NCBI GenBank assembly: GCA_965644265.1
Contig: OZ286460.1
Coordinates: forward strand, 98,952,001 to 99,016,000
Reading direction: 5' to 3'
Length of the DNA: 64,000 bases
From: Glycera tridactyla
Lineage: Eukaryota
Shown here: positions 2,878 to 10,654 of the stretch, piece by piece
Position numbering within the stretch: position 1 is the first letter of the stretch
Layout of the letters: every line of letters begins with the position of its first letter
The notes under the pieces: generated by a model
Databases searched by the model: none
The model's input: the letters and a program-made list of their open reading frames with translations, nothing else
What the model was told of the DNA's origin: nothing
Translations under genes and position numbers: made by a program

Positions 2878-3090
2878 GCCCTATTCGACTGGTCGGTTTC
2901 GTTGAGTACGGCTGGTCTGTTGACTACGATTCGTATTCGGGTGGTCGCTTAACACTTTTTCGTTGTGTACGATCTCAACGGTCAATTGACTGTGTTGAAC
3001 TCGTTAAATGGAATCTATTCGGCTGGGCTACGGGCGTTGAGTACATATCCGTCAACGCACTTTCAACAAAACCGACCAGTCGAATAGGCC
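2878..3090. mobile_element. CpG-rich MITE-like element with about 26-bp terminal inverted repeats
   Basis: cctattcgactggtcggtttcgttga at 2880 is the reverse complement of tcaacaaaaccgaccagtcgaatagg ending at 3088 (1 mismatch). Confidence 0.75.
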
Positions 3091-3386
3091 TATAGTCCAC
3101 TAGATCCCTCTCAGGTAATGTTCATGTCTGGTATGTCAGTGATGATCAGGATATCTGATTACATCATCTGATATTTACTACTGTTATGGAGGACATGGCA
3201 AATACTGGCTCAATATCTTCAGTATGAGTAGACACTATTAGATGGAAGTGAATGAAGAGAAATATGTTATGAGAACCTCAAAAATATTGAAATCTCATAA
3301 AAACCTCGATAATTCTGATATGGTGAAATATCATATCAATACAATCCAGCAGTGAAGACATTCAAGTGAATGAAGTGAAACTTTAC

Positions 3387-3548
3387 CTTGGCTCATTAGG
3401 CATGTGCTCTGACAGATTGGTGAGCAATACTGCCACATTGAATCCGATATCCTTTGCGGGATTATGGAAACGATCTGTGAACTCATTGAAATCCACCTTG
3501 CCATCCTGGTTAGAATCCACACACATCATGATGTATTCGATCTCCTCA
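3387..3548 (-). CDS. RyR: RyR exon 31, EF-hand 2: EEIEYIMMCVDSNQDGKVDFNEFTDRFHNPAKDIGFNVAVLLTNLSEHMPNEP(R)
   Basis: 162 nt, cccatatag| ... AG|gtaaag, phase 2-2. Confidence 0.97.
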
Positions 3549-4516
3549 CTATATGGGGGAAAAGAGCAAAATATGCATCAAGATCATTCAAACACATGGC
3601 TACTAATGTCTGGAACATCAATAGAAAGTTTCCACATGTGTATATGCGAGGCTTTCCCCATCGCAATTCCAAGCAAAGTAAACTGGGAAAAGTCTAGTTG
3701 TTCTACAATTGTCAGTAATAGTTAACAATCTGACTTCTGGCTGATATCCTCATCAATGTTGACAATCTGCATACATACCTTCGTCGCCGGTCAATGACCA
3801 TCTTGATCAACAAATTGTTACCAATTCCACATGAATATGTTTGGCTGGCAGCTCCACAGCACATACACAGGATCAGCAAATTGCAGGCAATTTGAAAGGG
3901 GCCAAACTAGGTCCTGGTATGATCCTGGATCTTGCATATAATGTATGACCTCCAGTATTTGAAAATAAGAACTCATACACTTGCCACATCTCTGTGGTCT
4001 GGATAAAATTCGCACAAAGATAAAACTGAAACATACCCCAACAAATGAATGGCTGAAAAAAATCAGCAATTTCAAGCTGATCACCCAGGAGATTACTCAG
4101 ATATTAGTTTCTCATCCTTGTGCAAACTATGAGAAGGAGCAAGTAGATGTTTTGGGAGTAAAATGCTATCTACAGAATGAACATCCTGTTTGCTATTATG
4201 CTCGCTTTTATGCCACACTTGGTTAATCAAAGTCATTCATTCGCATGAAATTCAAGAAAAACCCACAAAATACTGGTTGGCAACCATTCTTGTTTTCAAG
4301 CTGCAATGACTGACCCCTCCTCATGCAAAGAGGCATTTTACTGACAATAGATGATTCTTTATGTATACAGGTAGGACGTAGCCATGGTACAGGTTTACTG
4401 CACAAATTTGATCTATAAGCAGTCAAACCAGGGTCTAATTTGCTTTGCTGCTGCTACCTCTTTACCATCATTCTTCATTTCAGTATGTATGTGGAGATAC
4501 ACACATAAGCTATATA

Positions 4517-4676
4517 CAGTCCAACCTCCTCTAAAAACCACTTCACTATAAAGGCCACCCCAAGCTGTGACCTTGGTAATATTTTCAACAGTAAATGACC
4601 TCTCTATAAAGACCACCTCCCTATAAAGGCCACATTTGATGCAACCAAAGGCAGTCTTCATAGAGAGGTTCAACTG
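4517..4676. mobile_element. Family R2 MITE (Tc1/mariner-type, TA target duplication)
   Basis: TA|cagtccaacctc ... gaggttcaactg|TA with internal aaagaccacct repeats; related copies at 10421-10596 and 43619-43779, fragments at 41400-41690. Confidence 0.8.
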
Positions 4677-4970
4677 TATTTCGTGTTACCAAGACATGTC
4701 TGAGCGAAGGCTTTTTATCCCAAAGGTGTACACATACATTTTTTCCACTCACCAACATCTCGTAATCCTTTTCACCAATGAATTCTTGCCTTCCCTCTAT
4801 TAAAGCTATGTTACTTCCTATCACAATGTCACTAAATAACTCCTCTCCAACTATTGGCTGAACACCAATTCTAATCGATTGATGAATTGAAACAATTTCC
4901 GAACGATGGGACTAGTCAATAAGGTCAGGAGTACAACAATAATACTTCATATCCTTATATTAAATGGATT

Positions 4971-7714: not shown

Positions 7715-8206
7715 CTAGCAAAAATATGTGAGATCTGTAAGCATAATAGATATGTTCACAAACACTCCCGATGTAAGCCTACGGCCATAGTAACTACAAC
7801 CTACTCAAATGACTTATCTGAATGACTAGTCAGTGATCAGATCATTTTTCTACTCAGGTTGAAACTCGATCAATTATTATCCAACATGTCGGATGTTCAT
7901 GCAATTTCTACCATCGAACACTGAATCGAATACCCGGTTGGTAATTTCATCAGCTTTTGACCCAATGCTTGATGGCAAGAATCAGCACAGCAGACCTGTA
8001 GTGTCTGTTGTCATTAGAACTTTGTTAATTTGGCAACAGCCAGGGTATATCGGATTGTACATGCATGCTGGGAATAATAATGAACAAAATAAGTTCTCCA
8101 TGAAGAAGAGTGAGACCATGTAAGATATGGTTCTTAGTAGTGTTCGTTGATGTTCAGTACAGATACTGCATGCCTTGGCAGAGTGGCCATGTGTTTTGGA
8201 ACTTAC

Positions 8207-8286
8207 TCCGAGTAGATCTTTTGAGCTTCCATTGCTTTCCTGAATTCTTTATGAGAAATAACACCATCCTTGTTGGTGTCAAATTC
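8207..8286 (-). CDS. RyR: RyR exon 30d (EF-hand 1 variant) EFDTNKDGVISHKEFRKAMEAQKIYS(D)
   Basis: 80 nt, ccatgcacag| ... GA|gtaagt, phase 0-2. Confidence 0.95.
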
Positions 8287-8695
8287 CTGTGCATGGAAAA
8301 TAAGGTCAAATGAATAGATATATCAAAGGTAGTTGTATGATCGCGTCCATGATGAGTTGCCGTTTTCACGCAAATGGTTAGGATGAATGAAAGGCAGAAA
8401 GAATGAAGTCAAAAACTTGAAATGAAGTGAAGGTGAATTGGGATAATGAACCAAAATCAATAGATGGATGAACTTGAGTGAGGGTTCCAGGTGTTTCGGT
8501 GCTGGTGGAATCTCTTGACTATCACCTGATGAGAAAAGATTGACCATCACATTGCTGAAATTTATTAGTCCTAGTAAACAAAACACACTATTATAAGTAA
8601 ATATGGATTGGATGAAATAACCTGGATATTACAAAAATAACAAGGTAAAATTGTAACATGCCTAAGGAATGGCTTGAGACTGGTAGGAGACTTAC

Positions 8696-8775
8696 GGTGT
8701 ATACACTTTTTGTGCTTCCATAGCTAGTTTGAACTCTTTATGTGACACAGTGCCATCCTGGTTTGCATCATATTC
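8696..8775 (-). CDS. RyR: RyR exon 30c (EF-hand 1 variant) EYDANQDGTVSHKEFKLAMEAQKVYT(P)
   Basis: 80 nt, atcccaacag| ... CC|gtaagt, phase 0-2. Confidence 0.95.
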
Positions 8776-9364
8776 CTGTTGGGATTGAATGCAAGCAAGA
8801 AAGAAGCAGAGAAAATAAATGAAGGAACACGAAAAAAGGATTGCATGAAAAGAAAAGCCCTGATTGACTAGAAGTGAAGAAAAAATGGGACTGGATGAAG
8901 TATGACACAAGGCTGTATGATTCATCCAAGAAATCATGTACAAAGAGACAGCTGAAATAACTGCATATTCATTTAGCAATGAGAAATGAAGTCAGAAAAA
9001 TAAATAGCATAACATTCATGATAAAGAGAGTTAAAACTCGGCAAATAAATTTAGCAATGAGAAATGGGGTCAGGAAATGAATATCATGATAACGCTCATA
9101 ATATGATGAGCTACCTCACAGATTTCTCAGATAAAAGATCAACCTAGTGGTTCTTCTTTCAAAATGAAAAGGGTGTATGTAAAATATAAATAGTCGGCAT
9201 CAAGATGGAGTTCTTAAAAGTACTTATGTGTATAATGGAATATGAACATCTAGAATAAAAAATGATATTCAATCTGGGGTGGAGATGACTTGACATTTTC
9301 TTCAGAGAAGAAAACACCTAACATGCCGGAATGAGACACGGTATGCCTGCAGGTCATCACTTAC

Positions 9365-9444
9365 GGTGTGTAAGCCTTTAGTTCTTCCAAAGCTAGACTG
9401 AATTCTTTAGGGGAAATAGTTCCATCGAGATTCTCATCATAAGC
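9365..9444 (-). CDS. RyR: RyR exon 30b (EF-hand 1 variant) AYDENLDGTISPKEFSLALEELKAYT(P)
   Basis: 80 nt, ctcacacag| ... CC|gtaagt, phase 0-2. Confidence 0.93.
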
Positions 9445-10036
9445 CTGTGTGAGTGCAAAACAGTACCACCAACAATAGACAACATTGAACCAGTGCAAAT
9501 ACCAATGGCTGCAGATGATATAGAAAAAAATGAGGAAGGAAAGAATCATTAATGATACAGAAACAAGACGTCCATACCAAAAATCAAATAGGTAGCTAAG
9601 TACAAACTAGATGAGTAGTATTACAACAGATGAAAGTACAATATACATATACATACATAAATAAATATAACTAACATCAGCAATGTATCAATCGAAGACA
9701 GAGTCATTATCTTTTATAGACTGATTCCTCCAAATGACCAACCTATTCCTCATAGATGGGAAAATTCCTGAGGTACAGGGATTCTATATCAATGCTCATC
9801 AGCAATGTGTTTAGTTCAATGTCAAATTTGATATGTCTACAGATACTGCAGAATGTTGATGATCATTGTTCACTAACATCATAGCAATTGTTGCTGATGT
9901 TATTTCCATTCATACGATGACTTCATAGATTCAATAGATACAATGTTTGACGGTGTGCAAAGCAAAATATAAAAGACACAGTAAAGATTTACCAACAGCC
10001 AAACAAAGCTCAGCTATGCCACATTTACATACACAC

Positions 10037-10116
10037 CGTTTATACACTTTTTGATTTGCCAGAGCACGCCGAAACTCTTTATACGAAAGTGAACCATCTT
10101 TATTAGTATCAAATTC
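10037..10116 (-). CDS. RyR: RyR exon 30a (EF-hand 1 variant) EFDTNKDGSLSYKEFRRALANQKVYK(R)
   Basis: 80 nt, ctaac..ttattttcag| ... CG|gtgtgt, phase 0-2. Confidence 0.92.
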
Positions 10117-10334
10117 CTGAAAATAAGAGTAGGTTAGACTGAACTACCCTATCGACACTAGTATCAAATTCCTGAAAATAAGAGGAGGTTAGACTGAACT
10201 ACAAGAAGAACTGATGACTATGGGTGATGCATAATTTCATGAAAAATATCTGAAAGCTTGAAGGCCGAGTAAACACAAAGCAATCTCAATCTTCACTGAT
10301 GGATTGATTTTTCAACATCATCATGATGGTAGGG

Positions 10335-10654
10335 TGTCCAGTTGCAGCTAACAATTGCTAACATTTTGTAACGAAAACAGGGTATCCCATCCTTTTTTGA
10401 GACACTTGAAATAGAGAATACAGTCAAAACTCTCTATAAAGACCGCCTTCATTTGCATAAAATGTGGCCTTTATAGGGAGGTGGTCTTTATAGAGAGGTC
10501 ATTTGCTGTTAAAATACTACCACAATCGCAGATCAGGGTGGTCTTTAGAGAAAGGTGGTCTTTATAGAGAGGTGGTCTTTAGAGGAGGTTCGACTATATC
10601 TGATGGGGCATTTTGCAAATGTTTTCTCTGTTAGCTCAACTGAACAGCCTGCAG
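10335..10654. mobile_element. R1 copy interrupted by an R2 MITE (10421-10596)
   Basis: The R1 halves rejoin as gaaTAtctgatgggg; TA is duplicated at 10419-10420 and 10597-10598. Confidence 0.8.

Follow-up and report, generated by a model that had tools for sequence, protein, structure and literature searches.

A tandem array of four probably mutually exclusive exons for EF-hand 1 in a lophotrochozoan ryanodine receptor gene

The ryanodine receptor (RyR) gene of insects carries two mutually exclusive exons, termed a and b (ASI/IASI), in the SPRY2 domain (residues ~1135-1170); each mRNA contains one of the two, and their usage differs by stage and tissue (PMC3342285, PMC3989282, PMC3787966, PMC6026295). 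Further alternative sites in insect RyRs have been placed close to the calmodulin site and between RyR repeats 3 and 4, the promoter and the DR2 region vary in C. elegans unc-68, and a survey of tandem exon substitutions lists events in RYR3, fly RyR and unc-68 without giving their positions (PMC9741552). Across the open-access full text searched, mutually exclusive exons of RyRs are described only in insect SPRY2, and an array of EF-hand 1 exons is described in no RyR; a 2026 paper on a scallop RyR makes no mention of EF-hand splicing. Here we analyse a stretch of 64,000 nucleotides (nt) of contig OZ286460.1, hereafter the window, whose own numbering is used throughout and whose minus strand holds ~1,400 codons of one RyR gene. 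Between two constitutive exons of this gene, 29 and 31, lie four tandem exons of 80 nt, 30a-d, each of which codes for EF-hand 1 from its Ca2+-binding loop through the exiting helix to the linker. We judge, at roughly three chances in four, that this cluster represents four mutually exclusive, tandem-duplicated exons in a single lophotrochozoan RyR gene, and that the alternative versions set different Ca2+/Mg2+ inactivation of the channel.

The role of the EF-hand pair in RyRs is still debated, and mutations in it alter inhibition by Ca2+ and Mg2+ rather than activation. According to Chirasani et al., K4101 pairs with D4730, and E4075, Q4078 and D4079 pair with R4736, in the S2-S3 loop of the neighbouring subunit; K4101 mutants have a lower affinity for Ca2+/Mg2+-dependent inhibition, with a higher half-maximal inhibitory concentration (IC50) for both Ca2+ and Mg2+ (PMC10832476). 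The inhibitory divalent-ion site has been assigned to the EF1/EF2 loops, and the difference in inactivation between RyR1 and RyR2 has been attributed to the interaction of the EF-hands with S2-S3 (PMC12119028), the EF-hand region explaining part of that difference (PMC10832476, PMC12119028).

The array and its two constitutive neighbours, in the order of transcription, are as follows.

13121-13056, minus strand: constitutive exon 29, 66 nt, ending in phase 0 at ATG/GTGAGT; its product MILKFFDIFLKMKDLTSSEAFM is the incoming helix of EF-hand 1, in which E corresponds to RyR1 E4075 and M to Q4078
10116-10037, minus strand: alternative exon 30a, 80 nt, donor GTGTGT; first in the array and of the R-type defined below; product EFDTNKDGSLSYKEFRRALANQKVYK plus CG, completed to Arg with exon 31; charge +2
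9444-9365, minus strand: alternative exon 30b, 80 nt, donor GTAAGT; product AYDENLDGTISPKEFSLALEELKAYT plus CC (Pro); charge -4; the most divergent copy
8775-8696, minus strand: alternative exon 30c, 80 nt, donor GTAAGT; product EYDANQDGTVSHKEFKLAMEAQKVYT plus CC (Pro); charge -2
8286-8207, minus strand: alternative exon 30d, 80 nt, donor GTAAGT; product EFDTNKDGVISHKEFRKAMEAQKIYS plus GA (Asp); charge 0
3548-3387, minus strand: constitutive exon 31, 162 nt, phase 2, starting T GAG GAG; encodes EF-hand 2 plus the following segment

Each of 30a-d is preceded by a pyrimidine-rich tract and AG and followed by GT. The introns between the copies measure 592, 589 and 409 nt, those flanking the array 2,939 and 4,658 nt. 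Equal in length and phase, equipped with their own splice sites, set between the same two constitutive neighbours and 46-65% identical in protein sequence, the four exons have the properties of a tandem-exon cluster. A profile built from the four copies and run against all six frames of the window returned these copies at E-values of 1e-17 to 1e-20, with the next best match at 0.18, and revealed no fifth copy, intact or decayed. When every subset of 30a-d was spliced in silico between exons 29 and 31, each single exon alone gave an open frame through exon 31 (4/4), the skipping of all four placed TGA directly after exon 29, and all 11 combinations of two to four exons ran into a premature stop (among the pairs, a+b and b+c at TAG, c+d at a TGA within exon 31). 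With exons of 80 nt, single inclusion is the only productive form, and only single-exon mRNAs can encode a channel.

The copies have diverged to 59-72% nucleotide identity, with protein identities of 17/26 for a/d, 17/26 for c/d and 16/26 for b/c. Between copies, the proportion of synonymous differences (pS) is 0.56-0.90, near saturation, and that of nonsynonymous differences (pN) is 0.19-0.32; the synonymous excess is significant in five of the six pairs (Fisher p 3e-6 to 4e-3), the b-d pair giving a p of 0.09, which is not significant. Since pS approaches saturation while pN stays low, the four exons are old duplicates that have each been kept under purifying selection, not decaying pseudo-exons. 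These results agree with a first-pass annotation of the window: it had described four 80-nt GT-AG exons between a phase-0 exon 29 and a phase-2 exon 31, with coordinates and translations that match ours; had argued that exactly one exon is usable, as the in silico splicing bears out for every zero- and multi-exon combination; had given the same pair identities (16-17/26) and net charges (+2, -4, -2 and 0) that we obtained on recomputation; and had read the copies as purifying-selected rather than decayed.

Within the 26 residues encoded by each exon, 11 are invariant across the four versions (D3, N5, D7, G8, S11, K13, E14, F15, A18, K23 and Y25). Taking as canonical a 12-residue EF-hand loop with D at position 1, D or N at positions 3 and 5, G at 6, a hydrophobic amino acid at 8, S, T or D at 9 and E at 12, we find that all copies read D-x-N-x-D-G-x-[LIV]-S-x-K-E, with every Ca2+-ligand position intact, and by this measure all four versions should bind Ca2+. 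The exon 30 profile, which also matches the EF-hands of KChIP and neurocalcin, aligns without gaps and from end to end to RyR3 3918-3943, a stretch immediately followed by the RyR3 match of exon 31; exon 31 in turn aligns to rabbit RyR1 4106-4159 and human RyR2 4061-4114. From these RyR3 and exon 31 alignments, residues 1-26 of exon 30 can be placed at RyR1 4079-4104 and its split codon at 4105, such that residue 1 is the equivalent of D4079 and K23 that of K4101, and the E of SSEAFM in exon 29 is that of E4075. The swapped exon consequently holds the EF1 loop together with two known contact residues, the equivalents of D4079 and K4101. Exon 30b has Ala at the D4079-equivalent position, in place of an acidic residue. 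The versions otherwise differ at the non-ligand loop positions 2, 4, 7 and 10, at exposed positions of the exiting helix and at two linker residues. In spiralian S2-S3 loops aligned to human RyR2, K4101 has a conserved acidic partner, set in a strongly acidic patch reading EQY[DE]Y[DE]. Because the exon covers the D4079 and K4101 contacts with the S2-S3 loop, the best inference is that the swap tunes Ca2+/Mg2+ inactivation of the channel. The placement of the segment at RyR1 ~4079-4104 with K23 at K4101, and the retention of D-x-N-x-D-G-x-x-S-x-K-E-F plus K23 in all four versions, had both been proposed from a first reading of the DNA and are confirmed, the former by the alignments and the latter among the 11 invariant positions; the contact of the EF-hand domain with the neighbouring S2-S3 loop, also stated there, agrees with the published work (PMC10832476, PMC12119028).

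That the gene encodes a RyR is evident from collinear similarity across the central, RIH-associated, EF-hand and U-motif regions: by tblastn, full-length RyRs match 22-33 collinear minus-strand exons running from 59007 to 1441, which correspond to residues ~2950-4350 of ~5100, and the exon 31 product matches chains of RyR1/2/3 with an E-value of 5e-17. Among named proteins, the RyR of the annelid Capitella teleta comes closest (70.8% over the aligned exons), followed over the same measure by that of the brachiopod Lingula (68.7%) and those of molluscs and a nemertean (62-65%); one JGI transcript tops the similarity to the RyR of the window, at 72.6%. Because Capitella is the top named match and the SSEAFM terminus of exon 29 is common to Capitella and annelid-like transcripts, the source genome is most likely that of a lophotrochozoan, and within that group of an annelid.

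Counterparts in other animals were sought in RefSeq isoform sets, gathered as members of 90%-identity clusters. In several species the isoforms differ exactly in a 27-residue EF-hand 1 block and are identical in its flanks: two versions of the block occur in Mercenaria, in Magallana, Ostrea and Crassostrea angulata, in Mytilus, in the nemertean Lineus, and in each of Biomphalaria, Haliotis, Pomacea and Octopus, and three occur in Ruditapes. Across nine species other than that of the window, any one isoform of these sets carries a single version of the block. No swap was found in Ptychodera or Antedon, which have one version across their listed isoforms, nor in any of the nematode sequences examined, and none was seen in the arthropod sequences examined. 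At the genomic level, the locus of a relative whose exon 31 is 94% identical (L001) contains, in order, exon 29, an a-like exon (CG/gtgtgt), a d-like exon (GA/gtaagt) and exon 31, and a mollusc-like locus (L002) has the same a-like/d-like pair; a third locus (L003) is compact, with a single EF1 exon and exons 29, 30 and 31 within ~1 kb (L003:9193-10300). The two copies of L001 occupy 2.3 kb (L001:7704-10200), as compared with 9.7 kb for the four copies of the window.

One class of these exons can be followed across taxa. This R-type, recognized by an Arg end made through a CG split codon and by loop position 10, where the residue is small or aromatic, is present in bivalves, gastropods, octopus, L001 and L002, and here as 30a; wherever the genomic order is known, it stands first in the array and has a non-consensus donor. 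Among the other copies, 30d is identical to the major gastropod version (Littorina) at 24 of 26 residues and 30c to the major octopus version at 20 of 26. A tree of the 26-residue segments leaves their history unresolved; the R-type label is clustered on it (4 changes; 12.6 when shuffled), and by the approximately unbiased (AU) test (p 0.485) one origin for this type is neither rejected nor demonstrated. Searching 5.8 billion proteins with a profile of the four exon-bearing frames brought up nothing beyond RyR fragments of rotifers, a single genomic fragment of the R-type (P0480) and EF-hand proteins of a generic kind. Because RefSeq isoforms swap the same segment and L001 keeps the a-like/d-like order, the array appears to be a conserved lophotrochozoan feature that has been expanded to four copies in this genome. 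The earlier proposal of a single-gene RyR that varies this module by splicing thus draws support from the mollusc and nemertean isoforms that differ in this segment. The companion claim that such an array was undescribed holds to the extent that no paper was found, but not for automatic annotation, which already lists such isoforms in other species.

Rbfox proteins bind a motif, (U)GCAUG, that promotes inclusion of an exon when located downstream of it. Three such motifs follow exons of the array.

9322-9326, minus strand: GCAUG (GGCAUG), +39 nt from the 30b donor, a candidate Rbfox-type intronic enhancer
8657-8661, minus strand: GCAUG (GGCAUG), +35 nt from the 30c donor
8169-8173, minus strand: GCAUG (GGCAUGC), +34 nt from the 30d donor

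Downstream of 30a, exon 29 and exon 31, GCAUG is absent from the first 300 nt, and its background on the minus strand is 1.3 per kb. L001 carries UGCAUG at +29 from its d-like exon and none close to the a-like one, so that a (U)GCAUG in the proximal downstream intron is shared between species. The presence of GCAUG at +34 to +39 of 30b-d and its absence from 30a suggest that 30b-d are under Rbfox-type control. Other known devices for mutually exclusive splicing were also considered. Steric hindrance is excluded by the lengths of the introns between the copies, and U2/U12 incompatibility by the fact that all sites are GT-AG of U2 type. Control by docking and selector sequences, of the Dscam and 14-3-3 xi type, was rejected as well: no 10-mer of a flanking intron had its reverse complement in at least two other introns, in an exact-match search of low sensitivity, and the inverted repeats present are single pairs or copies of a dispersed element.

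Two repeats lie close to the array. A 98-nt inverted repeat, 89% complementary, brackets 30a-d with one arm in each flanking intron (4583-4680 and 10417-10514); it is built from the 17-nt unit GGTGGTCTTTATAGAGA of a dispersed element, further copies of which lie near 41.5 kb and 43.7 kb. In the pre-mRNA, this repeat could loop out the cluster and lead to its skipping or to back-splicing. In addition, a 55-nt tandem duplication (10134-10188) repeats the 30a acceptor together with the first 14 bases of its coding sequence; the resulting decoy 3' splice site lies 55 nt upstream, and its use would yield a 135-nt exon with an in-frame stop.

Taken together, these features suggest how the switch might operate. 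Messages containing none or several of the 30x exons would presumably be removed by nonsense-mediated decay. Exon 30a, with its weak donor and no GCAUG, may be the default choice, and 30b-d, with consensus donors and GCAUG, would be promoted in particular tissues by an Rbfox-type factor. In the protein, the exiting helix, in versions whose charge ranges from +2 to -4, would face the acidic S2-S3 patch of the neighbouring subunit. Because the exon charges differ and the helix would face this patch, graded coupling is predicted: the versions would differ in Ca2+ affinity, in the strength of EF-hand to S2-S3 coupling, or in both, and graded coupling would translate to graded thresholds for Ca2+/Mg2+-dependent inactivation, with 30a predicted to be the most easily inhibited version and 30b the least. 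The splice versions may in this way play the role that differences between the RyR1 and RyR2 paralogues play in vertebrates.

A number of points weigh against this account. The RefSeq evidence for the swap consists of Gnomon models rather than of full-length cDNAs that were sequenced. The exon 31 product of the window had no exact match in protein collections, and a degenerate exon 29/30 junction pattern run against JGI contigs hit 17 loci, all by chance and in unrelated genes. In the nearest genomic relatives the copy number is two (L001) or one (L003), and neither the profile search of 5.8 billion proteins nor the relatives' loci contained an orthologue of 30b or 30c outside this genome. On the side of the channel, the position of R4736 is occupied by Q, A, E or S in the RyRs of spiralians, and the mammalian EF-hand/S2-S3 interface appears to carry over to spiralians just in part; the S2-S3 loop of this gene lies outside the window, its partner residues having been read from other spiralian RyRs. 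As for control, the distance window for GCAUG was chosen after the data had been seen, and the presence of the motif after three paralogous exons could partly be inherited with the duplication.

Some of these points would fit an alternative that we consider unlikely, namely, that only the anciently shared 30a and 30d are spliced and that 30b and 30c are lineage-specific pseudo-exons, silent or rarely used. L001 has just an a-like and a d-like exon and L003 one copy, the protein collection holds no b- or c-like fragment, 30b has a long branch (0.54) in the tree and carries atypical residues (A1, L6 and P12), and purifying selection is not significant for the b-d pair (p 0.09). However, the reading frames of 30b and 30c are open, their ligand sets complete, their AG acceptors strong and their GTAAGT donors perfect, and both are followed by GCAUG at the same distance as 30d; b and c differ with a pS of 0.58 and a pN of 0.20 (p 0.004) despite a divergence to 72% nucleotide identity, and 30c matches the major octopus version at 20/26 residues. 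It is far less probable that the array serves mainly to control quantity, with double inclusion or skipping producing stop-bearing mRNAs that are degraded and thereby lower RyR output, and with the protein differences mattering little. The premature stop in every non-single combination is what such a scheme would produce, and both the 98-nt inverted repeat around the cluster, which could loop it out, and the duplicated decoy acceptor 55 nt upstream of 30a could contribute to it. Yet poison exons need no conserved coding, whereas here the protein is kept across phyla (30d at 24/26 against the gastropod version) and nonsynonymous change is suppressed between copies, and the inverted repeat is a dispersed element found at four places in the window. 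An assembly artefact, whether from collapsed or expanded haplotypes or from a mis-joined repeat, has nothing in its favour beyond the general possibility, and we give it a negligible chance: the copies are just 59-72% identical at the nucleotide level, a divergence that rules out such an origin, the introns of 409-592 nt cannot be aligned, and the same arrangement exists in independent assemblies of other species.

Elsewhere in the gene, a second duplicated exon pair was observed.

1713-1615, minus strand: first exon of the pair, 99 nt
1542-1444, minus strand: second exon of the pair, 99 nt, 23/33 identical to the first

Since 99 is divisible by three, exclusivity of this pair cannot be imposed by the reading frame; the intron between the two exons is just 72 nt long and might impose it. 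The corresponding segment exists in one version only in mollusc, nemertean and hemichordate isoforms. The RyR introns also hold long (CA)n/(TG)n microsatellites, in the regions 46.8-47.1 kb, 57.3-57.7 kb and 19.0-19.2 kb of the window, and a ~290-nt tandem unit (~56.9-57.6 kb) that adjoins a 432-nt run of N; the window has three such N runs, all distant from the exon 30 array.

More tentatively, and with the odds somewhat against it, the mutually exclusive array may be one form of an ancient splice switch, in which the R-type and an 'ISHKEF...YSE/D' type coexisted before the annelid/mollusc split, with tissue-specific, Rbfox-type use and different shut-off of the channel; this genome would then have four settings, plus the second exon pair in the ATP/caffeine region. 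If true, the RyR EF-hand domain would have a physiologically tuned role across the whole superphylum. An array kept for hundreds of millions of years that swaps EF-hand 1 alone would mean that evolution treats this module as an adjustable part. The four natural variants, with charges from +2 to -4 and intact ligands, could be used in binding and gating assays. For annotation, 80-nt exons are easily merged or dropped, and several deposited models hold one arbitrary version.

The device of mutually exclusive tandem exons is already known; its placement in EF-hand 1 of a RyR is what we found without a published description. The insect a/b exons resemble the array in affecting the same gene family through tandem homologous exons. 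However, the insect pair comprises two exons, each of 31-33 codons, in the protein-interaction domain SPRY2, whereas the present array is found ~3000 residues further downstream, within EF-hand 1 of the module for Ca2+/Mg2+ inhibition, and consists of four copies, whose 80-nt length, unlike the insect arrangement, makes the reading frame enforce exclusivity. Animals with a single RyR can thus gain isoform diversity in the regulatory core, beyond SPRY2 and the divergent regions. Another arthropod case adjoins the segment swapped here: RefSeq isoforms of the decapod Macrobrachium (P0193-P0207) differ before EF-hand 1, not in the loop exon, and swap the incoming helix (SNVELILRYFDMFLKLRDLTSSTTFQ vs SNVEMIVRFFNLFLRLKEVTSSASFQ). 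There the equivalent of exon 29 is duplicated, as known from model isoforms, and because both the exon and the phylum are different, the decapod swap is probably of independent origin.

A parallel outside the family is offered by alpha-actinin (ACTN1/ACTN4), in which a tandem duplicated exon is described as replacing the first EF-hand motif and altering calcium behaviour (PMC9741552, citing Waites et al. 1992). In that protein, one version is without calcium ligands, which results in Ca2+-sensitive and Ca2+-insensitive isoforms (PMC9741552); in the RyR array, by contrast, all four ligand sets are canonical, and the change is expected to be graded, in affinity, kinetics or surface charge, rather than on/off. 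The vertebrate RyR1, RyR2 and RyR3 provide the closest functional likeness, in that these isoforms, which inactivate differently in response to Ca2+/Mg2+, also vary in this segment (PMC10832476, PMC12119028). The EF1 loops of the vertebrate proteins are degenerate (VTDPRGLISKKD, DPDGKGVISKRD), whereas those encoded here are canonical. The source of diversity also differs, being gene duplication in vertebrates and exon duplication with splicing in one gene here, and alternative splicing could in this way yield mixed tetramers from a single RyR gene.

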